A DNA stretch of 64,000 nt, taken from assembly GCA_030704615.1 (NCBI GenBank), contig CM060733.1, positions 26,784,001-26,848,000 of the forward strand. Reading direction: 5' to 3'. The notes beneath the pieces were generated by a model. The model was not told the DNA's origin. It did no database searches and was given only the letters and a program-made list of their open reading frames with translations. Source of the DNA: Takakia lepidozioides. Lineage: Eukaryota > Plantae > Bryophyta. Both the position numbers and the translations under genes were made by a program. Positions within the stretch are counted from its first letter, which is position 1. Each line of letters opens with the position of its first letter. Shown one piece after another: positions 9,042 through 46,824 of the stretch.

Positions 9042-11276
9042 ATGTGGTTGAATCTATGGCTGCCCAGGGGCCCACTGGTGGTTTTCACAGAGAAGTCCAA
9101 GATCACCAGACTTCAAACATAAGTGCGCAAAGGAGGCACGTTGGATAGCAGGTTGGTTGAACCCTCCTTGGGTGAAAGCAGAGCTGGCTGCCATGATACA
9201 AGGTCTAGCACAATGTGGTGATGCAAGGACACTATGTATGGCAGGGCGACTGAAAGACGCGGTGCACATTTTGAACTGGCCAAGATATTTCGGCAGACTC
9301 CGACACTTACGTCCGTCTCTTGGTGGAGTGCATCAACATGCAAGGCCTAGAAGAAGGAAAGCAAGTGCATGCCCACATTATCCGAACTGGGTTCAAGCCA
9401 AAAGTCTTCTTACTTAACACCCTTATGAACATTTACGCCAAGTGCAGGAGCGTGCTGGATGCACGGCAAGTGTTTAACAACGTGCCTAAACGAGTGATAT
9501 TTACCTGGAATATAATGATAGCAGGATATGCCAATTATGGGTGCGGGAGGGAGGCAATTGAGATGTATGAGCAAATGATGCAGGAAGGGACGACACCTAA
9601 TAAGGTGACATTCATATGCATTGGCAAAGCATGTGCCTGTCTAGCATCCCTGGAGAAGGGCAAAGGGGTCCATGCCGACATTATCAGAGCTGGGATTGCA
9701 CCAGATGTGATTCCTGGAGACTACCCTTGTTGACATGTATGCCAAATGTGGGAGCATGCAGTATGCGCCTCAAGTGTTCGATAATTATACTCATCATGGG
9801 TGTTGTATGGAGGCTTTTGAGATGTATGAGCAAATGATACAGGAAGAGGTGACTCCGGACAAAATAGCTTTCATTTGCGTTCTCAGGGCGTGTGGCAGCC
9901 TGGCAGCCCTGGAGAAGGGCAAAGAGGTTCATGCTAACATTATCAAATGTGGAATTCCACCGGATATCATCCTGGAGACTGCCCTCACAAACATGTACGC
10001 CAAATGTGGGAACATGAAGGATGCGCTTGAACTGTTTGACAACATGGCTGAGCGTGATGCTGCATCATGGAGCGCTATGATTGCAGGATATGCTCAGAAT
10101 CATTGTGGTAGGGAAGCTTTTGGCATCTATGACCACATGATCAAGGAAGGCGTGGCACCAAACAAGTCACATATACTCAATGCTTGTGCCAGCCTTGCAA
10201 GCCTGGAAAAGGGCAAAGAACTGCATGCTGAGATAATCAAAGTTGGAATCCCAGCAGATGTCATTCTAGACACTGCCCTTGATAACATTATGCAAAATGT
10301 GGGAGCATGGAGGATGCCATTCAACTGTTTGACAATATAGCTCAACGGAATGTGGTTTCATGGAATGCAGTGATTGCAGGATGTGGTCAGCATGGTTGTG
10401 CCAGGGAGGCCCTTCAACTATTTGAACAAATGCAAGAGAAAGGGTTGAAGCCAAATAATGTCACCTTTATTTGTGTTCTCTCTGTATGTAGCCATTTAAG
10501 GCGAGTGGATGAGGGTTGTCACTACTTTGATTACATGAATCAAGTTCATGGCCTTGCTCCTACAGTGGAGCATTCTGGCCGCATGGTGGACCTTTTTGCG
10601 CGTGCGGGAAAATTGGTTGATGCGGAGGAGTTTTGCCAACAGAATGTCTATCAAATCAGGTGCTTCAGTGTGGGGGGCCTTGCTTGGTGCCTGCAGAATT
10701 CATGGCAATGTGGAGGTAGCCGAACGTGTGGCAAAATGCCTCCTGCAGTTGAATCCGCAGGAGGCTGTGACTTATGTGTTGCTATCAAACATCTATGCTG
10801 CAGCTGGCAGGTGGGACGATTCAGCAAAAGTGAAAAAACTGATGTAGGACAGAGGTGTGAGAAAAGAACCAGGGCACAACTACATTAAGGTGGACAACCG
10901 GGTGCACACATTCGTTGAAGAAGAGAATTCGCATCCACAAATTGAGGCAATCCATGCCGAGCTGAAGAGATTGTCTATGTGCATGAAAGAGGCTGGGTAT
11001 GTACCTGACACACAGTTTGTATTGCATGATGTGGAGGTGGAGCAAAAAGAAGTTTCTCTTTGTCACCACAATGAGAAGCTGATGATTGCTTTTGGGCTCA
11101 TGAGCATCCCCCCTGGGATGCCCATCCATGTCATCAAAAACCTACGGATGTGTGGTGACTGCCACACCGCTACCAAATTCATATCAAAGATTATTGGTCG
11201 TACAATTGTTGGGCGTGATACCAACCGCTTTCACCACTTCCAAGATGGGGATTGCTCTTGTGTGGATTATTGGTGA
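9042..11276 (+). pseudogene. PLS-class PPR-E-DYW RNA-editing factor, disrupted
   Basis: PLS motifs (VVSWNAVIAG, CASLASLEKGKELH, MYAKCG), E domain, PG box (RKEPG) and a full DYW domain ending CSCVDYW. Several frameshifts, an internal deletion near 9785 and an in-frame TAG at 10845-10847. Start position approximate. Confidence 0.9.
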
Positions 11277-12429: not shown

Positions 12430-14720
12430 AAATTTCTAGGGCGTCCTAGGGGTCGTGCTGATGAGCCCAAAATCAATGGCCAGCTTCTCACTTTGGTGAT
12501 AGAGAGAAAATTCCTTTGGCTCCTCCACCACATCATGCAGTACAAAACGTGTGTCAAGCACATACCCCGCCTCCTTCACCTACCTAGACAATCTTCTCAG
12601 CTAAGCATGGATTTCCTTAATTCTGGGATGCAGTTTGTCATCTACAACAAAGGTGTGCGCCCTGTTGCCAACCTCATTGTAGCAGCGACCTGGCTCCTTC
12701 CTAACCCCTTTGACCTTCATCATTTTTCTCACCTTTGCACTATCATCCCCGCCTCCTTCATCTGCCCAAACAATCTTCTCAGCTAAGCATGGATTTCCTT
12801 AATTCTGGGATGCAGTTTGCCATCTACAATAAAGGTGTGCGCCCTGTTGCCAACCTCAATGCAGCAGCGACCTGGCTCCTTCCTAACCCCTCTGACCTTC
12901 AACATTTTTCTCACCTTTGCACTATCATCCCACCTGCCAGCTGCAGCATAGATATTTGATAGCAACACATAAGTCGCGGCATCTTGTTCATCCCACTTGA
13001 GAATAGATGTTGCAGCACGTTCAGCCATCTCCACATTGCCATGGATTCTGCAGGCACCAAGCAAGGCCCTCCAAACCATAGCATTTGGTTTCATTGGCAT
13101 TTCGTTAATGAGCTCCTCTGCCTCATCCAATTCCCTATATGTCCAAGAAGGTCCACCATGCAGCCAAAGTGCTTTATTGTCGGAGAGACACCATGATCTT
13201 GACTCAGGGAATCAAAGTAGCGTCTTCTTTCATCCAGTACAGTGTGGCTGCATGTAGAGAGAACACATATAAAGGTGATATTGTCCAGCTTCAAGCCTTC
13301 CGTTTGCATTCCTTCAAATAGTTGCAGGGCTTCCCTATGACAACCATGCTGGGCATATCCTGCAATCATAGCATTCCAGGACGCCACATCTTGTTCGACC
13401 ATATTGTTGAACACTCCCTTTGCATCCTCCATGCTCCCACATTTGGCATACATGTCCACGAGGGCATTGTTCAAAGTGACATTTGGTACAATACCAGCTC
13501 TGACGATGTCACCATTGACCTCTTTGTCCTTTTCCAAAACTGGCAGGCTTGCACATGCATTGCAAACACGAACAAACGTGATGTGGTCGGGCTTCACCTC
13601 TTCCTGCATCATTTGCTCATATGTCTGCAAAGCCTCAGTCCTGCGCCCTTGCTATGCATATCCTGCAATCATTGCATTCCACGACACCACCTCACGTTCA
13701 GCCATAGTGTCGAACACTCCATTTGAATCTTCAATGCTCCCACATTTGGCATACATGTCGAGAGCTACCAAGCTTGCACATGCCTTGCAAACACAAACAA
13801 ACATGATGCGGTCAAAATCACCCCTTCCCACATCATCTGCTCAAAGGTCTCCAAAGCCTCCATCCCGCGTCCTTGCATATCCTGCAATCATCGTGTCCAT
13901 CCATCATTTGTGACATTTGTTCCATATTGTCAAACAACCCCTGTGCATCTTCAATGCTCCCACATTTGGCATACATGTCCACCGGGGAAGTGTTCAGAAT
14001 GACGTCTGGTACTATTCCAGCTTTGACGATATCACCATGGACCTCTTTGCCCTTTTCCAAAGCTTCCAGGCTCGCACACGCATTGCAAACGCAAACAAAC
14101 GTGATATGGTTGGGCTTCACCCCTCCGCGCATCATTTGCTCATAGGTCTCCAAAGCCTCCATCCCACACCCGTGTTGTTCATATCCTGCGATCATCGCGT
14201 TCCATGACACCACATTTTGTTCAGCCATGTTGTCGAACACTCCCTCTGCATCTTCAATACTCCCACATTTGGCTTACATATCCAGCAAGGCAGTGTTCAG
14301 AATGACATCTGGTACCATTCCAGATCTAACAATGTCACCATGGACCTCTTTGCCCTTTTCCAAGGCTGCCAGGCTCGCACACGCATTGCAAACGCAAACA
14401 AACGTGATGTGGTTGGGCTTCACCTCTTCCTCCATCATTTGTTCATATGTCTCCAAAGCCTCGATACCACGCCCCTGCTCTGCATATCCATCTCCTGCGA
14501 TCAGTCTGATGAGTGGGCAAATCAGGCTGAAATAGATTGAACAAGAAGGTTCCCTCACCACATTGTCCTTGACTTTGTGTCATGACTGATGGAGGATTCA
14601 ACCGACCATCAACCCAAAAGGACCTCTTGTATATGCTGCTTGTGTCCATGGTGGGGTAATGTCCGATTGGTCTGTAAGAACCACCATGGTGCAGCTGAGT
14701 AGCCATAGATTGAAACACGA
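12430..14720 (-). pseudogene. PLS-class PPR-E-DYW (truncated DYW), disrupted
   Basis: PLS motifs in ORFs 14274-14561, 13833-14240 and 13091-13630; E domain 12783-13130. DYW remnant [13 protein letters not shown]...[18 protein letters not shown] lacks CxxC and the terminal DYW. Contains stops and frameshifts. Confidence 0.9.
12568..12931. repeat. Tandem duplication (~182-bp period) of E-end/PG-box segment
   Basis: CTAAGCATGGATTTCCTTAATTCTGGGATG occurs at 12601 and 12783. Confidence 0.9.
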
Positions 14721-20787: not shown

Positions 20788-23090
20788 GGGAGATAATAGG
20801 AATAATGTAAGAACTTAATGCAAGCGCGTCAGGACGGTCCAGCCCTGACACCCGTACCGCCGGTTCTTCGCCTCCGGCAGACATCGAAAGGCAGCCGGCT
20901 GGGCTCGGTCAATCCCTCCCCACCCCCGCCCTCATCCCATCGGCGTCGTCGCCCCAGGCGCGTCGTCGCCCCCTGCGTCCTCGTTCTGCGACACCAGTCC
21001 ACCGCTTCCAGCAGTCCGCCAGTTCCTGTAACCCCCGCCCCGGGTTCAACCATCACCCCCATGTAACCCTCTGTAACTCCGCCGAGTGTAACCCACATTA
21101 CCATGTAACCCTTTGTAACCCATATAACCCCATGACCCTCTGTAACCCATGTAACCCTCTATAACACCGCAGAGTGTCACCCCCACCCCTATGTAACCCT
21201 CACTACATGTAACCCTCTGTAACACTTTGCAACCCATGTAACCCTATGTAACCCTCTGTAACACCGCAGAGTGTCGCCCTCACCCCTTATGTAACCCTCA
21301 CTCCATGTAACCCTCTGTAACCCATGTAACCCTCTGTGACCCTTTGTAACCCTCACCACCATGTAACCCTCTGTAACACCGCAGAGTGTCACCCTCATTC
21401 CATGTAACCCTCTTTGACCCTCTGTAACCCTCACTCCATGTAACCCTCTGTGACCCTCTGTGACCCTCTATATCCCTCACCAGGTGTAACCCTTACCTCC
21501 ATGTAACCCTCTGTAACACCGCAGAGTGTCACCCTCGCCACCATGTAACCCTCACTCCATGTAACCCTCACAAACCCTCTGTGGCTCTGTAACCTATGTA
21601 ACCCTCTGTAACACCGTAGAGTGTCGTCCTCACCCCTTATGTAACCCTCTGTAACCCATGTAACCCTCTGTGACCCTTTGTAACCCTCACCACCATGTAA
21701 CCCTCTGTAACACCGCAGAGTGTCACCCTCACCCCTATGTAACCCTCTCTGACCCTCTATAACCCTCACCACCATGTAACCCTCTGTAACCCATGTGACC
21801 CTCTATATCCCTCACCAGGTGTAACCCTTACCACCATGTAACCCTCTGTAACACCGCAGAGTGTCACCCTCGTCACCATGTAACCCTCCGTAACCCTCAC
21901 AAACCCTCTGTGACACCGCAGAGTGTCACCCTCATCCCCATGTAACCCTCACTCCATGTAACCCTCTGTGACCCTCCGTGGCTCTGTAACCCATGTAATC
22001 CTCTGTAACACCGTAGAGCGTCACCCTCACCTCTTATGTAACCCTCACTCCATGTAACCCTCTGTAACACATGTAACCCTCTGTGACCCTTTGTAACCCT
22101 CACCACCATGTAACCCTCTGTAACACCGCAGAGTGTCACCCTCACCCCTATGTAATCCTCACTCCATGTAACCCTCTCTGACCCTCTGTAACTCTCTGTA
22201 ACCCATGTAACCCTCTGTGACCCTCTATATCCCTCACTAGGTGTAACCCTTACCACCATGTAACCCTCTGTAACACCGCAGAGTGTCACCCCCATCCCTA
22301 TGCATCCCTCACTCCTTGTAACCCATGTCCTCTGTGACCCTGCGTAACCCGTGTAACCCTCTGTGACCCTGTGTAACCCATGTAACCCCATGTAACCCTC
22401 ACTCCATGTAACCCTCTCTGACCCTCTATAACCCATGTAACCCTCTCTGACCCTCTATAACCCTCACCAGGTGTAACCTTCACCACCATGTAACCCTCAG
22501 TAACCCTCTGTAACACCGTAGAGTGTCACCCTCACCCCTGTGTAACCTCACTCCATGTAACCCTATGTGACCCTCTGTGACTCTCTGTAACCCTCACCAG
22601 GTGTAACCCTCACCACCATGTAACCCTCCGTAACCCGTTTATCCCTCTGTAACACCGCTGAGTGTAACCCTCACTCCATGTAACCCTCCCATGTAACCCT
22701 ATGTCACCCTCTGTAACCCATGTAACCCCATGACCTTCTGTAACCCTTTGTAACCCATGTAACCCTCTGTTACTCCGCGAGGTGTAACCCTCACTCCATG
22801 TTATCCTGCATCGTGTAACCCCAATGTAAGCTTGTATCATGTTATCCCATATACCCCTCTCCGTGTAACTCCAGTTCCTCGTAACCCCATCATCCCTGTA
22901 ACCCTCTGCACGTCAGCGCTTTAGCTCCGCCTCGTGTAACCCTCATTGTGCAACTCTCACATTGTAACCCCACCATGTAACCCCGATACTGTATCAATCC
23001 CCCCCGTGTAACCCCCGATTGTGTCACTCATAGCTCGTGTCACCCCGGATCCTTTATCCCCAACGCATGTCACCCCTGTTCGTGTAGCCC
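20788..23090 (+). repeat. Left arm: ~270-bp GC-rich terminal sequence plus higher-order TGTAACCC arrays
   Basis: Very dense CATGTAACCCTC / TGTCACCC repeats; mirror image of the right arm. Confidence 0.9.
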
Positions 23091-23308
23091 CTTAGTGCCC
23101 GGCAAAAATTGGCGGGCTCCAAGAGGTGTCAGATATTTTGAATTCAAACCTGGGTTACACGATTCGGTGACATCAAAACCCACGTGTAACTCCATTATCG
23201 CTCGTCATTTTCACCAGGTGCGTAGACGACGTGCAGTCCCGAGGGCTCCGCTGCGTTGCCCGCGTGTATTATGCGATTTGTACTGTACTGGTGGTATTGT
23301 TGCTGCTA

Positions 23309-26300
23309 ATGGCATGTGCTGCCGCGAAGGTGCTAGACGAGGAACGCAAAGCAGCATTGGAATCAAATGGTTTGAAAGATGAGGCGGGAGAACTCTGTCA
23401 TTTGCAGCATTTGGTATCTCATTTGAAATGCATCCTACAGCTGCCCATAGACGGGCTTTTCAATCACACAAACCTCCGTTGGATACGCCAGGTTTCCCAG
23501 GGAAAAGGGAAACGGATATCCATCGAAGTAGCTGTCGTTCCATGGTCTCGCATTCCTGACTTTCTGGAGGGAGAAAGGAGTAGAGTGGATGGGAAGACCC
23601 AATTTTATGTTCAAGATCGAAGGTACCGTGAGTTGCCAGATTTGACAACACCGCGTGCAAACAGTTATCGTCAGTGGCATAAGTAAGTCACTTATGAGGG
23701 TTGTATAACATTCCCAGCCCCACTTCTTTCTGCTAGTCTAGCAAAGTCGTATATGGCGATAACCCTCCTCGCTTTATATGCTTTTTTTGCAGGTACCACT
23801 GCTGCTACGGCCCGATAGATAGGCGCACGGACCCGCCGATTGTGAAGAAAAAAGAAAAACCGATAGCAGCCTCCGATAATCAAACAGCAGTCAAGCGAAT
23901 CAGACGTAAGGCAGCGGATTTCGGAGAGTCATACAAACGTGGGTGTACGTGTAGCTTCAAAGTTGGCCAGTGTTTTCTAGATTCAGAGTTGGCAATCATC
24001 ACATACTTCCAGAAACAGCATGTGGATGCAAAAGGAAAGCCATGTCATGGTTCAGCTGACCCCTTTCCCATTTCTCGCGATTCGTGCATGCCCCTCGTCT
24101 CAGCCAAGATATGAAACAGTGGATCGTCGATAGTCTTCGCAGTGGCCTATCTCCAGCTATGATTATGACACAACACACTCAACAACTCCAGGAAGCTTGT
24201 GCGTCTCAGCCAGGCATGGAGTGGAGTCGCGATTGTTTCTTGTTCGAGTACGACGTGAGAAACATTGCCGACAAGCTTGCGATTGAGAGTTACAAAAAAC
24301 ATCCAGATGATGCACAAAGTGTACGTATGTGGGTCAATAGCAATCCTGAAAGCGTCTTCTTCTACCATGAAGAGACAGCGCCAGTGGCGGGTGATTTGAA
24401 GTTCGTAATTGGAATACAAACGGAGTGGCAAAAACAGAAAATGATCGACTTGGGACACAACCGTGTGGTATCCTGCGATGCAACATTTGGGACCAACGAA
24501 AATAAGGTATTCGTGTCACGCTTTACCTTTCATTGCATTCTGAAATGTGAGTGCCATGCAACTGTTGCCAATATTTTAACGCTCACCTTATTCATTTTTG
24601 TACCATTGCGACATTGCAGTTCCCAATGTATACCATGATGGTGTTCGACGAATGGCTCAACGGCATACCTGTTGCTTATATTATATCAGCGAGAAACAAA
24701 ACGACTGACTTGAGCCCCTGGATGAAACGTCTTCGCGACCGACTTCTTCAGAGCAAACCAGATTGGAGGCCAAATGCTTTTGTTGTCGACGATGCAGACG
24801 CAGAAATCAATGCTATCAGGTACACGGCTAGAAGTTACAATGTTCTGAGTCACACTACAAGTTGCATGCACGAGGGGTTTCATGGATCGGGCTACACTGC
24901 TGCTAGTTACACTGAGAATCACAGTAAGAGTTAAACTGCCAGTTACACGAGGGGGTGCATTGCTGCCTGTAACACTTGGAGTTACACTGTCAGTTGCTCG
25001 AGGGGTTACATGGATTGGGTTGCAGTGCTGTCTATTACACTGAGGGTTACACTATCAGTTAGACAGATGGTTATACTGCCTTGAGTTGGACGGAGGGTTA
25101 CACTGCTGTGAGTTAGACCGAGGGTTATACTACTGTGAGTTAGACCGAGGGTTACACTGCTATGAGGTAGACAGAGGGTTACACTGCGAGTTACACAGGG
25201 AGTTACACGGCGTGTCATCCGCAGTCCTACATGGATTAGGTTGCACTGCTATAGCATGTGAGTTACACTGGGAGCATCGCAGAGGGTTGTATGGGTTGGG
25301 TCGCTCTGAGAGTTACACGGTGTAACATGGATTGCGTTACAGCGCTGCGAGGGGTTATATGTGTTGGGTTACACTGCTGTGAGTTTCACTGATAGTTACA
25401 TGACCAGATGCACGAGGGGTTACATGAGTCACACTACTAAGAGTGACACTTTGAAGAGTTACACTTCTACGAGTTACACTGCGAAGAGTTCCTCTGATAA
25501 GAGTTACACTGACAAGAGTTACACTGATGGATTGGGTGGCATTTGATGTGTGTGCGTGCAGGGAATCGTTTGGGGACGTAGCAATATTTCTATGCCTTTG
25601 GCATGTTCGCCGCGCTTGGCTGAAACATTCGTGGCGTAAGATGCCCGATCCATACACTCGCAATGCTGTTTTGAAACAGCTTGGCGACGTAATGTACGGC
25701 ATTAACGCCTGTGTGGGAGTCACCCCAGAAGAGTGGGCGCTGGAGCGACTGGAAGATTTGAATTATTCCTATCCGCTTGCGCGTGACTTCCTACGTTACA
25801 TCAGAATGGAATGGGTCCCAAAACTGAGCATGTGGATCACGGGGGCTCGTTATATTCCCCACGCAAGTCAGGATACTAATGCCGCAATTGAATCTTGGCA
25901 CGGAAATTTGAAGGCTCGTTTACGCTCGGGAAAGCAAAGGCTTGATGGCAGGAGAATCGATTGGCTGATCAGCGAACTCGTGGGTCCTGTTCTAACCCAC
26001 TATTGGTATAGAGATAACTTGAAATCGAAAGGCTTCAAAAGGAATGTACGACAGGAGGAATTTATCAGTAATGTTGTTTGGACTGCAAGGGAGATCCCTG
26101 ATGTCAATGTTCATTTGCCCACTGTTCCTGGTCATCCGGCGATTGTGGATAGTGTTCAAACGGCCGGTCGAAGCTACACAATCTATGCACCTGCGACCAC
26201 CTGGGCTTGTTGCGATTGTCCATGGGCTTTGAAGGGTAACTTGTGCAAACATCAAATCCGCGTTCTTCAATTGATGAAGCCAAATCTGAAGGAAGGGCTT

Positions 26301-26708
26301 ATTGTGAAGCTCTGTGGCACAAAGCTCGGGACCATTCATGGAGGTCTTCACATGTTGATGAAATCGGAACTTCCAGATATTGATGCAGAGGAGGAAGTTG
26401 TGAATCTAGCAGAGCCTACGGAGTGCTCAGCATCATCCCGGCGTGGTCGGCAGGAGCCATCGGATGTTTCATCAATTGAATCTGAGATGAAGTCCCTGTC
26501 GCTTCTTGGCAATGAGAGTGAAACAATGCGCAAACATTTGCTTGCCGAGCTTCGTTGTGTTCGTGGGAGGCTGTCCACTTTACAAGTTAGAATCGACAAA
26601 GGTCTGTTGCACCCTCTTCAAGCAGTTCCATTCATAAAAAATGATGATGGAAACAACATGTCCCTTGCCAGGAAAGTAGATTTTGTAGACCGGTTCCGTA
26701 GTAAGTGA
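23309..26708 (+). CDS. MULE DDE transposase with SWIM zinc finger
   Basis: Exons 23309-23682, 23793-24506, 24620-24819 and 25562-26708. D in SCDATF, D in VVDDADAE, CxxH in CLWH, E in TNAAIESWH; SWIM CDCPWALKGNLCKH. One frameshift near 24060-24085. Confidence 0.9.
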
Positions 26709-28057
26709 CCATTGAGTCCATTGGCAATGACACTTACTTTGTGATCACCAAGTTTAATATGAAGTACATGTCTGTTCATGGGTTGTTATTCACTTTGCCA
26801 TTCCATCCACATTCAACCTATGTAACCCACTCAATGGGACACCCATGGGCCGGGGTGACACACCGCAGGGTTACACTGTCTGGGGTTTCATAACGTAACA
26901 TAGCTCTACTTAGTGTAACTTGCATCTGTGGTACTCCACACAGTGTAACACAGATGAGTGTGAACCTCTTCAGTGTAACTCATTGTGGTGTAACTCCAAG
27001 TGTAACTGCAATGTAACTATCAACAGTGTAACCTAGTATGTAACCCCATAGAATATTGCTGTCAGTGGTGTAACTCTGAGAACAATGTGACTACAATGTG
27101 ACTACAGGGTCTGGGTTAGTCTGCCGGGGTTACATGACCCTTCAATACAGAGTGGGAAGATGTTGAAGTCGAGCACCTTTAGTCACCAACACTAGCCCCT
27201 GTATGTGTAACCCCTCTATGTGTAACCCAATTTGTGTGTAACCCATGGACGTGTAATCCATGAGATAGATAATCATTCCGTTCAACCTATGTTATGGACC
27301 AGTGTAGCCCTCCGGAGTGTAACTTGTTGTTGTGTAACCCCAAGAAGTATGTATCCCGACCATATGTAACCCCCATTGATGTCACCCCATCGCATGTAAC
27401 CCATTGTACAATTTGGGGTGCACGCTATAAACCCCGATGCTACATCACCCCATCTTATGTATCCCCACGACACGTAGCCCTTGTATAGGCAACCCTGCCC
27501 ACTTTCATTGTGCACAGTGTAACTTAGAACTGTGTAACCCTCTTGAGTGAGTGTAACCCAGAGTGTTGTAACTCCAAGAAGTATGTAGCCCGACCAGATG
27601 TTACCCCCACACTATTGTGACCCCATCGTATGTAACCCATTGTACATAGCCCTCATGTATGTAACCCCATGTAGTATAAATCTGAGAACTTCAGTGCACA
27701 AACACTTCAGTGCGAAAAAAATAAAAAATAAAACAAATGCGCATAGTCGAGGTGGGGTTACATGCCACGAAAGTATACTGTTTCAGCAACGTGACCCTGA
27801 CATAGCCAGGTATGTAACCCATAAGTGTAACCCCACGTTGTGAGACCCGGCATGGTGTAACCCATCACTTATGTGTGAACCCACAGAGTGTAAGCCCATT
27901 GCCCCAGGGCCCAAAGGTGTACCCAAGTACTTGTCTATGATTCCACTTCATGTAACCTTATAAGGTGTAACCCCATGTAAGCCCATTGCATGAAACCCAA
28001 ACTATGAAGTGTTACGAACAAACCACATAGAAGCAAAAATGCATCAAGAGACGCTAT

Positions 28058-30180
28058 TTATTTCTTTGGCCATCTGACCAAGTCTTTGTCCATCTCGTCA
28101 CACAGCCAACTAATCATATGAGTACGGGAAGCTATCATGGTTGACTCGTTGAACCAACTTGCAGTAAACGCCCGCCTATGACGGGTTCGATCTTCTGTGG
28201 TTTTCACATTGAACTTCCACTCCAAGTAAAATTGCACAAAACAAAGTGCATAATAGCCGCACTCCCAACAGCTCCGTTGTTGGGGGACACTGGCCTCAAA
28301 CCATTCCATCCTCTCCATGACGTAACTGAAGTCATCAGATCCAGGCATGAAATCAAAGAACGCTATGGCAAAATTTCGCAAAATTCCTTCAATGAGTTTG
28401 GGTCGGGCAATGGTTTTATGGGAGTCCAAATGTACTATCCGACCTCGGCGCTCTAAAACAGCTACACTCCAGTGATCACTGCAACACAAACAAAGCCGTT
28501 ACGTCAGAATAGAAAAAAACATCTCCAATGAAACCCATTGTGGTGTAACCCAGTAGTGTAACCCTTTGTACTGTAACTCTAAACGGTGTTACACAACTAG
28601 TCAGCAGTCACTAGTGCAACTCAGTCTAGAATAGAGGAGTGTAACCCAACATGCTCAGTCAATGCTGAAATTACTTACTCGAAGACAATAGGGATGACAA
28701 CCACGTCCACAAGATCTCGATTCTTTGTGAACACCATCCCTCGGGCATCCTGAGTGTACCATTCTTGCACCAACCCGAATAGCGTCTGCAGATCGTTACC
28801 ATTGGTACGCATGACATGCCATTGAAAAGGAGCACAGATGACAAACTCAGGTGCGATAGCCTTAAACAATTTGGCCTCCAGAAGTTTGTTGTAACCCGAG
28901 AGCAATGCATCTGTGACAGTTGCTCTTATTTTATACATCGGCTCAAAATCTGTCTCTTCCAAGTAAAACTGTAACGGACTAGAAGCCAGGAAGGCATCGC
29001 CATAATAAAACTTCACTTCGGGCGCCCCAGGAGGGTCCGACACCATTCTGAACTTTGTCAAGTACCGTTGTTTTAGTCTGCACAACAAACCGCACATTAC
29101 GAACATTACGATGCATCATACAAGAGTTATAATCAATATTCAAAATCAGAGAGGATCAAAGTACAATGAGGTACCTCGAACGCTCCCGCAAGTGCTTGGC
29201 CAGGACCTCTTGCTGCTGGACAACGTCAACCTCCGAGACCCCTGCACTTTTGCCTTTCGGTTTGGTTCGCTGTTTTTTGGGTGCGACAAGAACAGATACT
29301 TCTTTGTCAGCGCTAGGGGGTTCAGCCAACCGCTTTCTTTGAGCAGGCGGCCGTTTTGACCTCCTGGGATTCTCTGCAACCCTGACAATGCCGCCGATAG
29401 GGGGAATTTCTGAGCCAGAGGTGCCTTGTTCTGAGTTTGCTGCAAGTGCTGAAGACTGCACTCCCTCGTCTGAGACGTGCTGGGAAGGTGATTGACCAAG
29501 GGCAGAAGTGTCACAGCTCACCTCCTCGGTGCTACCCCTGTCAGTGTAACCCTTCTGTTCAAACCCCTTGTCACGCTTCTTAGTGTCACCCTTCTCTTCG
29601 GCTACCTCCTCAGTGTCACGATTCTCAGTGTCACCCTTCTCAATGTCACCTTCTCTTCGGCTACCTCCTCAGTGTCACTCTTCTTAGTGTCACCCTTCTC
29701 TTCAGCTACCTCCTCAGAGTCACGCATCTCAGTGTCGCCCTTCTCTCCGGCTACCTTCTCAGTGTCACCCTTCTCTTTGGCCGCATTATCAGTGTCACTC
29801 TTCGCAGTGTCACCCTTCTCATCGGGTTCCTTCCCAGTGTCACTCTGCTGAGTAACAATCTTAGTGTGTCACCTTTGCAGTTCCACTCTTCTCAGTGTTA
29901 GATGCTCCGCAACATCTTCTCTTCGTGACTCTCCACAGTGAAACGCTTCTCAGTGTGACCCTGCTTTGTGTCACCCTTCCAACTGAAAACCTTTCCTCGG
30001 TGCACCTTCCCCGTGTCACCCTGTCGATGTCACTCTTCTTTGCATCAACCTCCTCAATGCCATCCTTGTTGTGTCGCCCTTCTCAGCACCCTCCAAAGAC
30101 CATGTTGACTAGCAGAAGACCGTCATCCGTCGCGACTAGTGGCCGTGGCAAAGGGTGTCACCTTCCACGACTAGGGTAGT
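28058..30180 (-). CDS. Ulp1-like (peptidase C48) SUMO-protease domain protein, MULE cargo
   Basis: Exons ~30180-29175 (acidic EKGDT repeats, frameshifted), 29077-28679 and 28478-28058. Catalytic H (DHW), D (HLDS), Q (VPQQ) and C (ECGYY) are present, preceded by VVIPIV. Confidence 0.8.
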
Positions 30181-30589
30181 GGAATAATTACATCCATGAC
30201 AGTTTTGTTACACTCACTGACATCTACATGTGGGTTGGCTGTGGAGTGTCACCCCTATCAGTGTAACCCATGTCAAGTCACTCTCAACGGAAGTTGCAGT
30301 GTTCACGGGCAAATGGTGTGTCACCCACGACAATGGTCCCTCACGACATTGTCAGCCACACCGGTATCGTAGTGTCACCCTGAGGGTGCAGTGTAACCCT
30401 CCTTCCCTGTTGCTCCTCTGCTGCACAGTGTAACCCTGAGGTGCAGTGAAACCATCCTTCCCTGTTGTCCTCTCTGCACAGTGTCACCCTGAGGTGCAGT
30501 GTAACCCTCCTTCCCTGTTGCTCCTCTCTGCACAGTGGCCCCTGAGGTGCAGTGTAACCATCGAGTTTCAGGGCATCCTCCCTTTGCCA

Positions 30590-33500
30590 GAGTCACCCTG
30601 CGCATCAATGGGACCCACGAAGGCTGGCTGGGTCATTATGAGAGAGGTTGACCACATGACTGAAAAACTAACTTACATTGCTGCATCGAGGGGTTCAACC
30701 CAGCATCTCCAGATTCAAAGTCATACACAGACTCTGGGTCAAGAGGGGTCCCCGATTCTTCGATTAAGACCTTCAAAAGAAATGACGGGGGCTGCGGACA
30801 AGGAGGTTCGCACTTGGGTATGTTCCACCTTGATGTATCATCTTCAGTATCAGTATCAGAAATCATGGGCAAATCCCGCGTCAAGTCTGCTAGGTTCACC
30901 CCTAAGTGCAGCTGGGTTGAGTACAATTCACCAACCTGCGACAAAGATAAACGGCAGATTGACTTGGAATGATGTCCTCGTCATGTACATCGTCGCTCTG
31001 CGGGCGGCGGAATTGGCCCATCGCTCGTCTGCGCGCCCCCTACGCCCCCTGTATCGCATTGTGGAGGGGCCCCATACACAACTTCGTGAAGCTCACGTTG
31101 AGCCTCAAAAAGGTTTTTGAACGCATTGGCGAACTTGCTTGATTGGTCATGAGCTCGGACTCATCTGCATCGGGAAAAAGACAAAGGTTTTTTGTCGTGG
31201 GAACGAGGTTTTTGAAAGTGCAAGGGTTACACTATGTAAGGGTTACACTGACTAGGACAAGACAGTGGTTCGGTACACGATATGGGTTACACCACCCTGT
31301 TAGAGACAGTAGTTTGCAATGGGTTACATACCATGGGTTACACTACTGAGATTACACAACGAGTGAGGGTTAACAAATCTAGGTTTACACACGAGGGGGG
31401 GTACCATTAGGGGGTACACTGATTACAGGGTTACATACTCCGAGGGTTACACTGATTTACACACAGCGAGGGTTACACTGAGTACAAGGTTCCACATAGC
31501 GAGGGTTACACTGATTACAGGTTACACACAACGAGGGTTACACTGAGTTACAAGGTTCCACATAGCGAGCGTTACAATGATTACAAGATTACACACAAAG
31601 GGGTTACACGACGAGAGGGGTGACAGTGGATGGAGTAACACTTACAGAGATACCAAGGCACTACAGACCCAAGGTCTCTCATATACGGATGCCCAAACGC
31701 GCATTGAAGTCCATTTCTGTTGGTGATTCGCTGAAGAGGCCACAACACCAAAGCTGGATAAACGATTCTCTCTGTTGGATCGCAAAAGTGATGGGCGGCG
31801 CGACGACGGCTTGCCTTGCAAAATTGTATAGCTCCGTTGATCTAATTGACCGGTCACCCCACTCTTCTGTACTCAAACTCGATCTTAAGTCTTCGAGCTC
31901 AGAATCCAAGGTCGCAATTCCGTCACCAGGGGTGCAAAGTACATCAGACTAAAGCGTAATACTCATCGACCAGGTCCTTCACCTTTGAGGCCGTAAGAGC
32001 ACTTTCCAGAAGTTCAGTCGTGAACCCCAACCTGGGATGCGTTGGGAAACTGACCTGCCCATGATTTCTTACATCGTTGTGGGCTACAATTCTCAAAAGA
32101 GAGTGGTGGCGGTCCAATGTGCGGTTTGGTGAGATTCTCCATTTGACTGATCAATCCTTCGGCAAAACCACGAGTGAATTCCAACGGATGTGGAACAACC
32201 AACCTTTGATCCATCTACAGTAATAGTGATGACAAGAGGATTTGAAGTTCTGGCATCGTCAAGGTCGTATTGACAACAGCTAGTTCGTTCCATCGTGTCA
32301 TCATCATGTGAGGCTTGGCTCTCTCGATGGACTCGTGTAAGTCTCCCACCTTTTTCTTTTTCTGCTTTGGCATGTCAGGATGCCCAATGCTCTCTAAATA
32401 CCCTTCACCCGATTCAATTCCTCTATCATTAACGGACCATGATCCGGCTGGGCAGTAAATGCCTTGTGGCAGCAACAACACTTGTCCATATCATCGCTTC
32501 TAAGATGATATCGACCTCCCTGCGCAATACAGCGTGAGGGGTTACACCAGAGAAAAATGTTACAGCACGAGGGGGTACACATGAAAATGGGTTACAAACA
32601 AGATGGGCTACACGGGGTTACACAGAGGTGGGTTACACACCATAGGGTTTTTAAAAGGGGTCCTCTGTAGGTGGTTACACTCTGGGTTACACGCCACAGG
32701 AGAGACAGGGGGGGGTAACACAAAGGGTTACATGGATAGACAACAGCCCCCAAAATTTGAAACAGAGAAATGGCAGGGAATCCAACTTGATTGTCTGTCG
32801 ATAGAACCCAACTTGATTTTGCAGCTGTCGCATGGACTGCGCCCTCGCCTCGCGCAACAAATTCTTGGAATGACAGCCGGCAAAACCCCTTCTCATTGAA
32901 TTCGGAAATGGGAACTGAGGAATAAGGCCATGCGGTAGCAGAAGGATTGAGCTGGAGTTCTCTTTCGCAAGATGAACCTTGAGCTCCGGTTTCCCCGGTT
33001 TGCAATGTTGATTTTCTTTGCAATAGGGACAGGTAGAGGCGGGCTTCAATCGCCGCCTTGTCTCTCTCGTTAGAAACCTGCCGAATAGAAGGACCAGGGA
33101 CAGAAACAGCAGGAGCACTAGAAGATGGAACCTCTGTAGCAGAAATAGCCGAAGAAGGTACAACAGCAGGCACTTCAATAGGATCTGCAATCTCACCCAA
33201 AGCCACCCTATTTTGCAGAATCCATGCATGATATGCATCAACGAAGAAGCTGGAACAGAATTCATCACATTTTCAACAGCCATGGCATGCTTGAGCTCCG
33301 CATCAGGAAACGGTTTTGTTCCTTTCGGTCTGGCCATACATGCGGCCGTTCCATCGACAATATGCCGATTCAATCTGCTCTTATCTACCTTTACTGCCCC
33401 ACAATAAGGACATTTGAACTTAGGCCGGCCCTTTGCTCCTCCACCTTGGCCTCTCTACACCCGGGTGGTGGCAGTACGCGATCATTGTAGCATGCTCATG

Positions 33501-33593
33501 CTCAGTGTACCAAAAGCGAACTCGTTCGCCATCCCTTTTCAAGTGATCAAATGGAATAGTAGCCTCTCCAGGGAACAAATAACAATCAGCCAT
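30590..33593 (-). CDS. Unknown spliced ORF with N-terminal C2HC-type zinc-finger-like motif (separate gene or 5' half of the Ulp1 gene), disrupted
   Basis: ATG at 33593. After a 1-bp indel it reads FKCPYCGAVKVDKSRLNRHIVDGTAAC. Probable exons 33593-~32787, 32520-31646 and 31164-~30590, separated by motif-filled introns. Contains frameshifts and stops. Confidence 0.5.
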
Positions 33594-34909
33594 GACAAAG
33601 AAAAAGCTGACAGAAGAGAAGAGAAGAGCAAGAGCAAGAAAAGACAAGACAAGAAAAGACCAAGACTTGTGAGAATTCCGAAGAATGCACAACAGGGAGC
33701 ACGCACAGCAAGGAGTGCAGGAAGAATATGAATGGCTGCGAGAAGGGGAAAACTGAACAATGATCAAAGAACGAAGAACGAAGCTAGCTAGATGTCACCC
33801 GTAAGGCACGTCGGTTAAGCGAAAGACGGCGGTTCATTAAAATCTGGCGGCTTGCAATCAATTATATCCGCACTGACTCACACGTGTATGAGTTGCAATC
33901 CCGTGTCACCCGGAATAGCGGAGTGTAACCCGTAACCCTACACTTGTGAGCGCGACAAACCGGCCAGTACTCGAATGCCAGGCACGTCGAGTGTAACCCT
34001 CCGTCAGGTACCCAGATATGATGTAACCCTTCGTCACAACCTCATGTACCCCTAGTCTATGTGACTCCCGAACACAACATCGATGTAACCCTGTCATATC
34101 AAACCATTAGTATGCAACCTCCAGGTAAACATGGTCAATGTAATGCCCCACCCATGTAACCCTAGCCTATGTGGCTCCGCGAGCGCAACATCCACGTAAC
34201 CCATCAAACATGTCAACCCATCTAACCTCCATTACTAAAACCGTCTACCAAGCTAGCATGTATTGAGAAAGAAAACACCGTGTAACCCCTGTGTGTAACC
34301 ATACCACACGTGAGGTAGTCATATAAACCATCAGACATGTAACCGGTTGACAGTGCTTGCAAAACACGCATGATTCGATACGTATTGCATCCATAATAGC
34401 GATGAGTAGGCTGCCCCGGCTGGTGTGTGAACAAAAGATACACGAGAGGAGAGTGAATGGGCACCCCGTCAAATGAGCGGCTGTTTGCATGGCTAGACCG
34501 AAAGAAACAAAACCCTTTCCTAATGCGGATCTTAGGAATACCATAGCCATCGGGGACGGTGACAAAACAACAAGAATGACATTGAGAAAGAAAAAGGATA
34601 GAGACAACCGTATCAATCGTAGAGAAAACCGTGGTAATAAATTTGACGGATCGTTGCACGGAAAGAGTTGTCTTGTATGTTGCTGGGATGACGATACTGA
34701 ATTGAATGAACTACAAATCTTTCGCATTGATGTGTGAAGCCGATTGGGCACCATGGGAATTGCAGAAAGCTGATGCCCCAAAGCAAAAAAACGAGCGAGC
34801 TAAGAATCTGGAAACGGATGGAGAGAGCAAATTAGGGTTTCGGCCTCTATTTAAACCTCCATTCGGCGTCGGATAGTTTACACGTGTATGATGTACACGA
34901 GGCGGTGAT

Positions 34910-37235
34910 ACTGAGGGTTACATGGTGGTGAGGGTTACAGAGGGTCAGAGAGGGTTACATGGAGTGAGGGTTACATAGGGGTGAGGGTGACACTCTGCGG
35001 TGTGTACAGAGGGTTACATGGTGGTGAGGGTTACAAAGGGTCACAGAGGGTTACATGGGTTACAGAGGGTTACATAAGGGGTGAGGACGACACTCTACGG
35101 TGTTACAGAGGGTACATAGGTTACAGAGCCACAGAGGGTTTGTGAGGGTTACATGGAGTGAGGGTTACATGGTGGCGAGGGTGACACTCTGCGGTGTTAC
35201 AGAGGGTTACATGGAGGTAAGGGTTACACCTGGTGAGGGATATAGAGGGTCATAGAGGGTTACATGGAGTGAGGGTTACATGGTGGTGAGGGTTACAGAG
35301 GGTCAAAGAGGGTTACATGGAATGAGGGGTTACATACGGGTGAGGGTGACACTTTGCGGTGTTACAGAGGGTTACATGGTGGTGAGGGTTACAAGGGTCA
35401 CAGAGGGTTACATGGGTTACAGAGGGTTACATGGATTACAGAGGGTTACATGGAGTGAGGGTTACATAAGGGTGAGGGCGACACTCTGCGGTGTCACAAA
35501 GGGTTTGTGAGGGTTACGGAGGGTTACATGGTGGCGAGGGTGACACTCTGCGGTGTTACAGAGGGTTACATGGTGGTAAGGATTACACCTGGTGAGGGAT
35601 ATAGAGGGTCAGAGAGGGTTACATGGAATGAGGGTTACATAGGGGTGAGGGTGACACTCTGCGGTGTTATAGAGGGTTACATGGTGGTGAGGGTTACAAA
35701 GGGTCACAGAGGGTTACATGGGTTACAGAGGGTTACATGGAGTGAGGGTTACATAAGGGGTGAGGGCGACACTCTGCGGTGTCACAAGGGTTTGTGAGGG
35801 TTACGGAGGGTTACATGGTGGCGAGGGTGACACTCTGCGGTGTTACAGAGGGTTACATGGTGGTAAGGGTTACACCTGGTGAGGGATATAGAGGGTCACA
35901 TGGGTTACAGAGGGTTACATGGTGGTGAGGGTTATAGAGGGTCAGAGAGGGTTACATGGAGTGAGGGTTACATACGGGTGAGGGTGACACTCTGCGGTGT
36001 TATAGAGGGTTACATGGTGGTGAGGGTTACAAAGGGTCACAGAGGGTTACATGGGTTACAGAGGGTTACATAAGGGGTGAGGACGACACTCTACGGTGTT
36101 ACAGAGGGTTACATAGGTTACAGAGCCACAGAGGGTTTGTGAGGGTTACATGGAGTGAGGGTTACATGGTGGCGAGGGTGACACTCTGCGGTGTTACAGA
36201 GGGTTACATGGAGGTAAGGGTTACACCTGGTGAGGGATATAGAGATCACAGAGGGTTACATGGAGTGAGGGTTACAGAGGGTCAGAGAGGGTTACATGGA
36301 ATGAGGGTTACATACGGGTGAGGGTGACACTCTGCGGTGTTACAGAGGGTTACATGGTGGTGAGGGTTACAAAGGGTCACAGAGGGTTACATGGGTTACA
36401 GAGGGTTACAAAGGGGTGAGGACGACACTCTACGGTGTTACAGAGGGTTACATAGGTTACAGAGCCACAGAGGGTTTGTGAGGGTTACATGGAGTGAGGG
36501 TTACATGGTGGCGAGGGTGACACTCTGCGGTGTTACAGAGGGTTACATGGAGGTAAGGGTTACACCTGGTGAGGGATATAGAGGGTCACAGAGGGTTACA
36601 TGGAGTGAGGGTTACAGAGGGTCAAAGAGGGTTACATGGAATGAGGGTGACACTCTGCGGTGTTACAGAGGGTTACATGGTGGTGAGGGTTACAAAGGGT
36701 CACAGAGGGTTACATGGGTTACAGAGGGTTACATGGAGTGAGGGTTACATAAGGGGTGAGGGCGACACTCTGCGGTATTACAGAGGGTTACATAGGGTTA
36801 CATGGGTTGCAAAGTGTTACAGAGGGTTACATGTAGTGAGGGTTACATAGGGGTGGGGGGTGACACTCTGCGGTGTTATAGAGGGTTACATGGGTTACAG
36901 AGGGTCAGGGGTTATATGGGTTACAAAGGGTTACATGGTAATGTGGGTTACACTCGGCGGAGTTACAGAGGGTTACATGGGGGTGATGGTTGAACCCGGG
37001 GCGGGGTTACAGGGAACTGGCGGACTGCTGGAAGCGGCGGACTGGTGTCGCAGAACGAGGACGCAGGGGGCGACGACGCCGATGGGATGAGGGCGGGGGT
37101 GGGGAGGGATTGACCGAGCCCAGCCGGCTGCCTTTCGATGTCTGCCGGAGGCGAAGAACCGGCGGTACGGGTGTCAGGGCTGGACCGTCCTGACGCGCTT
37201 GCATTAAGTTCTTACATTATTCCTATTATCTTCCC
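34910..37235 (-). repeat. Right arm: GGGTTACA arrays plus terminal sequence
   Basis: Reverse complement of the left arm; higher-order unit number differs. Confidence 0.9.
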
Positions 37236-44210: not shown

Positions 44211-46824
44211 CACAGCCAAGAAGGTCTACCATGCAACCAAAATGCTCTACTGTAGGAGTGAGGCCATCATCTCGAGTCATCGAATCGAAGTAGTGAAGGC
44301 CTTCATCCACCAGTCCCAAATGACGACATACAGAGAGGACACATGTAAAGGAGATAGCATCTGGCTTCAAGCCTTCCTGCTGCATTTGTTCAAACAGATG
44401 CAAGGCCTCCATGCCACACCCATGTCGAGCATACCCTGCAAGCATCGCACTCCATGAGACTGCATCTCGCTTAGTCATCTTATCAAAAACTTGGCGAGCA
44501 TCATTTATATTCCCACATTTGGCATACATGTGAACAAGGGTATTCTCCAGATTGACATTAGGCACAATACTGGCTTTAATGATGTCAGCATGGACCTCTT
44601 TGCCCTTTCCCAGGGTTCCCATGCTGGCACAAGCATGGAGAAGGCTAATGAACGTGACTTTGTCTGGCATAACTCCTTCACGTATCATTTGCTCATAGAT
44701 CTTGAAAGACTCCCTTCCACACCCATGCTGAGCATATCCTGCGATCATTGCATTCCATGACACCACATTTCTTACAGCCATGCTGTCAAATACTGTACGC
44801 GAATCTTTTATGCTGCTGCATTTCGCATACATGGCCATCAGAGCAGTGTCAAGAATGATATCTGCCAATATTCCGACTTTGATGATGTCGGAGTGGACCT
44901 CTCTGCCCTTGTCCAGGGCTGTCGGGCTTGTACACGTGTTGAGAATACAAACGTGACACTGTCAGGCGTCACCCCTTCCTTTTTCATTTGTTCGTAGATT
45001 TCAAATGCCCTCTTACCACACCCATGCTGAGCATATCCTGCAAGCAGTGAACTCCAAGACACCACATCTCGTTTAGCCATGTTGTCAAATACTTGATGCG
45101 CATTCTTCATGTCCCCACATTTCGCATACATGTCGACAAGGGAATTGCCCAGAATAATAGTTGACTCAATTCCCATTTTGTCCATGTCAGCATGGACCTC
45201 TTTGCCCTTTTCCAGGGCTGCCAGGCTGGCACATGCATTGAGAATGCCAACAAAAGTTACCCAGTTGGGTATCACTCCTTCCCCTATCATTTGCGTGTAC
45301 ATCATCAAAGCCTCGCTTCCACACCCATGCTGAGCATATCCTGTCCATGAGACCACATTTCGCTTGGCCATATTGTCGAACACTTGATGTGCATCCGTCA
45401 TACTCCCACATTTCGCATATATGTCAGCAAGGGCATTGTCCAGAATGATATCTGGTCCAATTCTTGCTTCTATCATGTCAACATGGACCTCTTTGCCCTT
45501 TTCCAGGGTTGCCAGACTGGCACACACATTTAGAACGCAGGTGAAAGTTTGTCCGGCATAACCCCTTCCAGTATCATTTTCTTGTAGGTCTTGAAAGCAT
45601 CTGTACCACGCCCATGCTGCGCATATCCTCCGATCATCACGATCCATGAGACCACATTCCGACGAGCCATATTGTTGAACACTCGACAAGCATCGTTTAT
45701 GCTCCCACATTTAGCATACATGTCAACAAGGGCAGTGTCCACAATGATGTCTGACACAATCCCAGCTTTAAAGATGGCGCTGTGGACCTCTATGCCCTTT
45801 TGCAGTGTTGTCAAGCTTGCACATGCATTGAGAACACAAATGAATGTGACTTTGTCAGGTGTCACCCCTTCGCATATCATTTGCTCGTAGATCTACAGGG
45901 CCTCCCAACCACACCCGTGCTTGGCATATCCTGTGATCATCACAGTCCATGAGACCACATTCCGTTGAGTGGTACTGTCGAACACCCGACGGGCATCCTT
46001 CATGCTCCCACATTTGACATACGTGGCAATAAGGGCAGTGTCCAGAATGACATCCGGTTCAATTCCAGCTTTGATGATTTCAGTGTGGATCTCTATGCCC
46101 CTTCCCAGGCTGGCACATGCATTGAGAATGCAAGAGAATGTGACGCTGTTGGGTGTTACTCCTGTCCGTATCATTTGCTCATAGATCTCGAAGGCCACCC
46201 TGCTGCACCCTTGCTTAGCACTGCGATCATCGCCCTCCATGTGAATAATTCTCGCTCAGTCATCTTGTCAAACACTTGACGAGCATCCTTCATACTCCTA
46301 CACTTGGCATACATGTCAACGAGGGTATTCACCAGAATGATATCTGGCTCAATTCCAGCTTTGATCATGTCAGCATGGACTTCTATGCCTTTTAACAGAG
46401 CTTCCAGGCTGGCACGCGCTTTGAGAAGACAGGAGAAAGTGACATTGTCCGGTGTCATCCCTTCACGTAGCATTTGGTCATAGATCTTGAAAGCCTCCCT
46501 GCCACACACATTCTTGGCATATCCTGCTATCATTATATTCCACGTAAATATATCTTGTTCAGGCATGTTGTCAAACACTAGGCGTGCATCAACCATGCTA
46601 CCAGACTTAGCATACATGTTGACAAGGGTGTTGTGTAGAAAGATGTCTGGCTTGACTCCACTTTGGATAATGTGGGCATGCACCTGCTTTCCCTCTGCTA
46701 GGCTTTTCATGTTGGTGCACTCCAGCAAGAGGGAGATTTTAAGTGATGGAGTCTGCCAGAATGCCACCTTGGTTCAAAATGTGCAGAGCCTTTTTCAGTT
46801 GTCCTGTATTACATAGTGTCCTAG

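Follow-up and report, generated by a model that had tools for sequence, protein, structure and literature searches.

Why would a transposable element multiply one short word throughout its own non-coding DNA, and which protein would read it? The question is posed by a stretch of 64,000 nucleotides from the moss Takakia lepidozioides (contig CM060733.1; the whole stretch is called the window here, and positions are counted from its first base), in which nucleotides 20788–37235 form a 16.4-kb Mutator-like element (MULE) bounded by terminal inverted repeats (TIRs). The element carries a transposase gene, a gene for a Ulp1 protease and an open reading frame (ORF) with a single CCHC zinc finger, and it is filled with the 8-bp word TGTAACCC. 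Judging from sequence, we hold it to be about evenly balanced whether the word arrays are self-recognition arrays read by an accessory protein of the element, probably in favour of its expression, and we would place a little under half of that weight on the finger protein specifically as the reader.

The word occurs 223 times in the window against 2.26 times expected from dinucleotide shuffles, an enrichment of about 100-fold, and 221 of these copies lie inside the element, with two in the remaining 47.5 kb. When the fourth base is left free (TGTNACCC), there are 284 sites inside the element and 7 outside, this base being A in 223 cases, C in 42, G in 24 and T in 2. The sites are polarised in orientation between the two arms (Table 1), their spacings peak at 9–10, 16–17 and 25–26 bp, and they are spread over at least eight separate compartments whose repeat units, of 10, 15, 27, 33 and 53 bp, differ in sequence. 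The flanks of the word likewise read CCYA-word-TC in the arms and CAG-word in the interior. That the 8-mer alone is common to these differing units and flanks argues for selection on the word and not for one spreading satellite.

Apart from one coding exception, the word is restricted to non-coding DNA: there is no copy in the transposase exons, the Ulp1 catalytic exon or the finger ORF, and a single one in the other Ulp1 exon. These per-compartment counts uphold what an earlier note, made from the letters of this DNA, had described as a motif amplified in arms, introns and spacer and scarce in exons and flanks. Its statement that the motif is much rarer in most exons holds for the conserved exons, which are nearly word-free, but not for the upstream part of the Ulp1 gene, where a basic stretch is accompanied by EKGDT-like coding repeats with a 15-bp period, built on the variant TGTCACCC (29521–29870).

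The ends that the same note had assigned to the element, 20788 and 37235, are confirmed by complementary termini and paired arms. The outer 173 nt (20788–20960 versus 37062–37234) are 98% complementary, and the inverted arms, each of about 2.2 kb, pair in blocks of 145–289 nt at 95–99%. Tandem arrays within the arms have unit lengths of 10, 16–17, 36–37, ~98 and ~335 bp, the right arm having roughly one more of the higher-order ~335-bp units than the left.

Between the arms, the last transposase exon has 48 homologues with E values down to 4e-99 and 35–46% identity, most of them carrying PF10551; the earlier exons also match relatives, all exons having been searched one by one and not as joined or repaired gene models. 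On the window exon itself the Pfam MULE domain (PF10551) is matched weakly (E 0.038), and the SWIM domain (PF04434) reaches 18.8 bits for a cut-off of 19.6 (E 0.0011), its CxC...CxH pattern being kept in relatives. A CxC...H segment at the N terminus is conserved in relatives as well, and we take it to correspond to the WRKY/GCM1-type DNA-binding domain of MULE transposases. Removal of 24820–25561 in silico restores both the frame and the homology, and the relatives have continuous coding sequence where the window has this word-filled intron. The Ulp1 gene is recognised by a Peptidase_C48 match (PF02902, 22.7 bits for a cut-off of 20.7, E 9.6e-5); splicing of its intron in silico joins IPIVF-D to DHW, and the His, Asp, Gln and Cys catalytic motifs of the C48 domain are all intact.

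The third gene is the ORF that the earlier note had left unrecognised, describing it as a minus-strand frame with a CPYC-x12-H-x7-C motif. It is present as a CCHC-finger ORF, frame-broken in the window copy. The spacing of the finger fits the classical C-x2-C-x12-H-x3-8-C/H zinc-finger pattern, and its Pfam scores fall just below the zf-Di19/C2H2 cut-offs (zf-Di19 26.0 versus 27.5). An intact version of 300 amino acids (aa), P0001, is encoded by the Logan contig L001, which comes from independent reads and, compared with the window, has 11 mismatches and 20 gap openings over 1.55 kb; the same indel states recur in contigs of four other runs. In an AlphaFold2 model of P0001, residues 57–87 form a strand, a strand and a helix at a predicted local distance difference test (pLDDT) score of ~60. 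A look-alike search of the ESM Atlas returned unnamed clusters only.

Further observations concern the state of this region in the assembly and its presence in other data. The contig L009, from the same sample, matches window 25133–26728 at 100% identity. Between ~30.6 and 34.3 kb, the window departs from independent short-read contigs mainly through single-base indels. The ratio of gaps to mismatches there is odd for natural decay and resembles an unpolished long-read consensus, and the assembly may be locally unpolished; the window copy may be defective, and some of its frame breaks may be assembly errors. None of the runs on record as RNA contains the stretch. A small run whose type is not on record, X6, covers the finger exon only (window 32731–33691, depth 22), and X8, from the same study and likewise of a type not on record, belongs to a second species (organism B) and covers window 33272–33701 at ~98% identity. 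Such coverage would fit a transcript of the finger exon and its presence in a sister species, and proves nothing.

An exhaustive HMMER search of 1.8 billion protein representatives with P0001 found one true homologue, P0053, from the same sample (E 9e-4, residues 9–98, 31–32% identity). On its contig, L007, the place of TGTAACCC is taken by CAGTC[CT]GC(TG), abbreviated CAGTCYGC, which occurs in the non-coding gap downstream of the P0053 ORF and in QQT repeats of the next ORF. At L007:1468–2703, it is CAGCAGACT that is read as QQT repeats in the ORF after the finger ORF, which mirrors the EKGDT repeats of the window, word arrays extending into coding repeats in both cases. Other loci, L002–L006, encode transposases 38–45% identical to that of the window and carry, on the other strand and at the distal end of the locus, a finger ORF; their finger reads CxxC-x12/13-H-x4/5-C and is followed by a P-x-P-[DN] motif. 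The corresponding 476-aa family comprises more than 120 clusters, with the finger in 117 of the 119 retrieved members, a nearly invariant finger region, a variable and proline-rich middle and a conserved C-terminal part. Profiles of P0001/P0053 and of this family match at E 1e-4 to 3e-4, and because this match is joined by a shared position and a shared orientation, we regard homology as probable. The ORF is therefore not junk or a captured host fragment, an outcome that the earlier note had considered fatal to its proposal: P0001 is intact, and relatives have a probably homologous ORF at the same position.

In L006, the ORF directly downstream of the finger ORF combines a helical N-terminal part with a Ulp1-like C-terminal part (HW, LDS, ECG) that matches the window Ulp1 at 1e-5, and the helical part shows a weak relationship to the equivalent ORFs of L003 and L007. 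On the basis of this pairing in L006 and of the related N-terminal parts in L003 and L007, we regard the finger/helical/Ulp1 module as old in this clade. In the window, the word-free blocks 30621–31200 and 31621–32530 contain no more than short, disrupted ORFs and are possibly what is left of the helical-domain exons known from relatives; a helical-domain homologue sought in window 30.6–32.5 kb gave only non-collinear matches at E >1, and Pfam was empty there. L004, a contig of an environmental assembly, carries a complete element without word arms, ~10.4 kb long and bounded by TIRs of ~400 bp. Its TIRs (91–496 and 10073–10467) are 80% identical, its ORFs encode the transposase, proteins of 154 and 304 aa and the 476-aa finger protein, and it would make a useful outgroup for the clade. 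L008, a 674-kb contig with a 37%-identical transposase, was dropped, having shown no TIRs, finger ORF or word.

The words are specific to lineages. In a small sample, which L007 entered without a transposase, the matrix of words by lineages is nearly diagonal (window, L001, L007, L002–L005, L006). TGTAACCC is the word of the window and L001 lineage, TGTAACATG that of L002–L005 (7–11 copies in L004 and L002, mostly outside ORFs) and CAGTGTCAC that of L006 (13 copies); the top 8-mers have 13–20 copies versus at most 8 in shuffles. The matrix has an exception in the interior sites of the window, whose CAG prefix and C variant resemble the L006 word. The predicted base-contact positions of the finger (−1, 2, 3 and 6) differ among lineages, the window lineage having D,S,R,R, P0053 D,I,Q,R, the 476-aa family S,L,R,D and L006 N,L,M,V, while the zinc ligands, K at position 1 and L at position 4 do not vary.

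A word that has multiplied independently in eight compartments or more, that conserved exons lack and that sister lineages replace by others is what would be expected of the cis target of a self-encoded, density-dependent binder. The core layout of this bryophyte-type lineage is a TIR, a transposase gene (+), an opposite-strand accessory module (CCHC finger, helical part and Ulp1) and a second TIR. We propose that TGTAACCC is its cis target, multiplied by tandem-repeat growth wherever this is tolerated, that is, in arms, introns and spacers. The word would be read by a sequence-specific DNA-binding protein that the element encodes, the single-finger accessory protein being the likeliest candidate; through the density of its sites, the element's own copies would be singled out, and binding would keep them in a transcribed or unmethylated state, perhaps through recruitment of the Ulp1 deSUMOylase to the chromatin of the element. 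We infer that the word is bound, what binds it and that relief from silencing is the outcome, and the recruitment of Ulp1 is suggested by gene linkage and by the precedent of KIU, the fusions of VANC and Ulp1 discussed below. A more far-reaching version is speculative and, to us, unlikely: that a deSUMOylase tethered to the word evolved independently in this clade of bryophyte MULEs. A fast-evolving single CCHC finger would dock Ulp1 on the dense word arrays, and the protease would strip SUMO-dependent silencing from its own family only. The base-contact residues of the finger would then change along with the private 8-bp word, as a convergent counterpart of VANC/KIU made from unrelated parts.

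Several points weigh against an accessory reader or weaken the case for it. The earlier note had suggested co-variation of motif and finger ORF as a check, and words do differ among lineages with different finger paralogues; the transposase, however, varies with the word no less than the finger protein, and co-variation cannot separate the two candidates. Furthermore, a TGTNAC core recurs across the lineages and could point to the more conserved transposase as the reader. A single zinc finger normally reads 3–4 bp, so flanking contacts or multimerisation would be needed for an 8-bp word. The AlphaFold2 model of P0001 has a pLDDT of 42, the finger region alone looking folded, and an hhalign probability of 41–55% makes the homology of P0001/P0053 to the 476-aa family no better than probable. 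In the window, the finger ORF is broken by 1–2-nt indels, the transposase has a frameshift near 24066–24084 relative to two relatives, and no target-site duplication is seen, there being no 8–11-bp direct repeat (at most 1 mismatch) within 20 bp of either end.

The alternative to which we give most weight, though still on the unlikely side, is that the reader of the word is the transposase. In that case the arrays would be loading pads by which transposase is concentrated at the ends, as with the subterminal repeats of Ac, En/Spm or Hermes, or would serve self-activation as reported for AtMu1c, and the finger protein would do something else, perhaps acting in integration or on chromatin as a MURB-like cofactor. 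The densest arrays are indeed subterminal and inverted, as transposase sites would be, the zinc-finger-like CxC...H segment of the transposase is kept in relatives, the TGTNAC core recurs where transposases remain 38–45% identical, and the AtMu1c transposase is sufficient to bind its TIRs and to lower the methylation of cognate copies (bioRxiv 10.64898/2026.08.24.746577). Yet there is no word in the terminal 239 bp, the usual binding region of MULE transposases, the TIRs of the complete relative L004 lack word arrays, and the words in introns and spacers lie far from the ends, with no obvious use in synapsis. Because of the word-free terminus and the TIRs of L004, the word is probably not used for end recognition. 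This would favour an accessory reader over the transposase, and only mildly, since a transposase by itself can bind and hypomethylate its own family, as that of AtMu1c does.

That the arrays are neutral satellites seems improbable to us. A slippage-prone subterminal repeat could have expanded and spread to other non-coding parts by gene conversion or internal rearrangement, with an apparent exclusion from exons because exon arrays kill the copy. Every cluster is a single-orientation tandem array and the arms differ by whole higher-order units, as such a process would leave them, and the words found at ~1 per kb in relatives could partly reflect composition. Neutral spread does not readily account for an 8-mer that is kept while units and flanks differ among compartments, for a different private word in each sister lineage, or for a motif-filled intron that arose where relatives have exon, with splicing signals and frame kept. 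Still more remote, and in our view very improbable, is a role of the host, either through a host factor that reads the word as a telobox-like site (TRB-type proteins recruiting repressive marks) or through a hairpin RNA of the arms that triggers RNA-directed silencing. The word does contain AACCCT, near the core of the plant telomere and telobox, and the 2.2-kb arms are 98–99% complementary, but just 7% of the sites continue with the A needed for a telobox, and the unrelated words of sister lineages do not fit a single host factor.

An accessory protein reading its own element's word would have a close parallel in the VANDAL elements of Arabidopsis, whose motifs form tandem repeats in introns and upstream regions and whose accessory proteins have conserved and variable parts (PMC5735166). 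Like VANDAL21 and VANDAL6 (PMC5735166, PMC10398659), the moss element is a MULE with a transposase and accessory genes, and it has one short motif as tandem repeats in introns and other non-coding DNA, with different motifs in related elements and an accessory protein in which conserved parts stand beside highly variable ones that bear repeats. In both, the accessory module has a link to Ulp1, VANC–Ulp1 fusions (KIU) having been described (PMC13317346). Unlike VANC, which is reported to have a PMD/MAIN-like fold (PDB 9LNK) and to be dicot-specific (PMC13547354), the candidate reader in the moss is a single CCHC finger without similarity to VANC. VANDALs are without TIRs, whereas the moss element has ~2.2-kb arms with up to 50 words per kb, and the function of VANC has been demonstrated, whereas that of the moss finger protein is a proposal. 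Kinship of the finger protein with VANC was considered and rejected, a sequence search of all PDB chains (E up to 10) having given only C2H2 fingers. Fold searches with the model of the 476-aa relative were empty, and the P0001 model was too poor to search. The earlier note's suggestion that this may be an independent system is borne out by the sequence search and by the fold search with the relative. By analogy, the moss element looks like a separately evolved counterpart that resembles VANDAL/VANC in its genomic signature and is not a member of that system.

Other known elements share single features. Kaonashi/KI-MULEs and other angiosperm Ulp1 MULEs (Hoen et al. 2006 and van Leeuwen et al. 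2007, both cited in PMC13317346) have a Ulp1 (Peptidase_C48) accessory gene too; they are angiosperm elements and mostly non-TIR, whereas the moss element belongs to a non-seed plant and has intact catalytic motifs and a finger/helical/Ulp1 module. Its ~2.2-kb arms exceed published MULE TIR lengths of 14–500 bp (PMC6446971) or up to 1.5 kb (PMC12973397). AtMu1 and MuDR, MULEs with a transposase only or with MURA and MURB, belong to the same transposase superfamily, are bounded by TIRs and have a transposase that binds them, but their introns and spacers are not saturated with words and a finger/Ulp1 module is absent. En/Spm (with the 12-bp motif of TnpA), Ac (AAACGG) and Hermes have many short motifs in inverted subterminal regions, read by an element protein. 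Theirs are tens of sites near the ends only, whereas the moss element has ~290, including those in introns and spacers kilobases inward.

A literature search found no paper describing such elements in bryophytes. Until recently, when transposase and TnpA activators were added, the VANDALs of Arabidopsis were essentially the only transposons for which sequence-specific anti-silencing had been demonstrated. A lineage of non-seed plants with the same signature, namely a private word together with Ulp1 and an accessory gene that evolves fast, built on a zinc-finger protein of an unrelated kind, would suggest that this strategy is convergent and general. If the proposal is true, the element would offer a simple protein–word pair for studying the co-evolution of specificity, a link between SUMO removal and escape from silencing, and possibly a programmable targeting module.

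Table 1. Features of the element and density of the word along it (window positions)
Feature	Position	Strand	Words per kb	Remarks
Left terminal TIR segment	20788–21026	+		word-free; 64% GC; CpG observed/expected 1.06
Left arm	21027–23020	+	49–50 (arms)	tandem arrays; 97 TGTNACCC words, all + strand
Transposase gene	23791–26705	+		MULE type with putative SWIM finger
Transposase exon 1	~23791–24545	+		CxC...H zinc-finger-like N-terminal part
Transposase exon 2	24596–24819	+		weak MULE-domain match
Transposase intron	24820–25561	+	9	742 nt; GT..AG; word arrays of 27-bp and 15-bp units
Transposase last exon	25562–26705	+		SWIM match just below cut-off
Spacer between convergent gene ends (inter-gene spacer)	26706–28060	.	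17	23 words
Ulp1 (C48) protease gene	28061–30100	-		Pfam and catalytic motifs
Ulp1 catalytic exons	28061–28478, 28679–29115	-		HW, LDS, QQ..ECG motifs present
Ulp1 intron	28479–28678	-	17	GTAAGT..CAG; 3 words
Word clusters	29521–30620		~15	
Region between Ulp1 gene and finger ORF	30101–32740	-		word clusters 30101–30620, 31201–31620 and 32531–32740 alternating with word-free blocks 30621–31200 and 31621–32530
Word clusters	31201–31620, 32531–32740		29–33	
Finger ORF	32690–33593	-		single CCHC finger C-x2-C-x12-H-x7-C, KGRPK before it
Spacer between finger ORF and its head-to-head fragment	33594–34430	.	10	8 words
Decayed inverted partial finger-ORF copy	34435–34551	+		51% identity over 39 aa; stop just upstream of aligned part
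Right arm	34911–36995	-	49–50 (arms)	105 words, all - strand
Right terminal TIR segment	36996–37235	-		one TGTNACCC; 64% GC; CpG observed/expected 1.03
Flanking DNA (47.5 kb)			0.15	

The two terminal TIR segments are CpG-island-like, with ~100 CG per kb and an observed/expected ratio of ~1.05, in CpG-depleted flanks (0.46–0.50). Kinship of the element with a neighbouring Pack-MULE was rejected, the termini of the two being unrelated. A second repeat family, with no relation to the TGTAACCC element, is marked by words such as AAATGTGG and ACATGTAT, which recur at ~300-bp spacing and in opposite orientation in the two arms of this Pack-MULE (window 9500–10300 and 13400–14450) and reappear as a tandem array near 44.5–46.6 kb (window 44500–46650).

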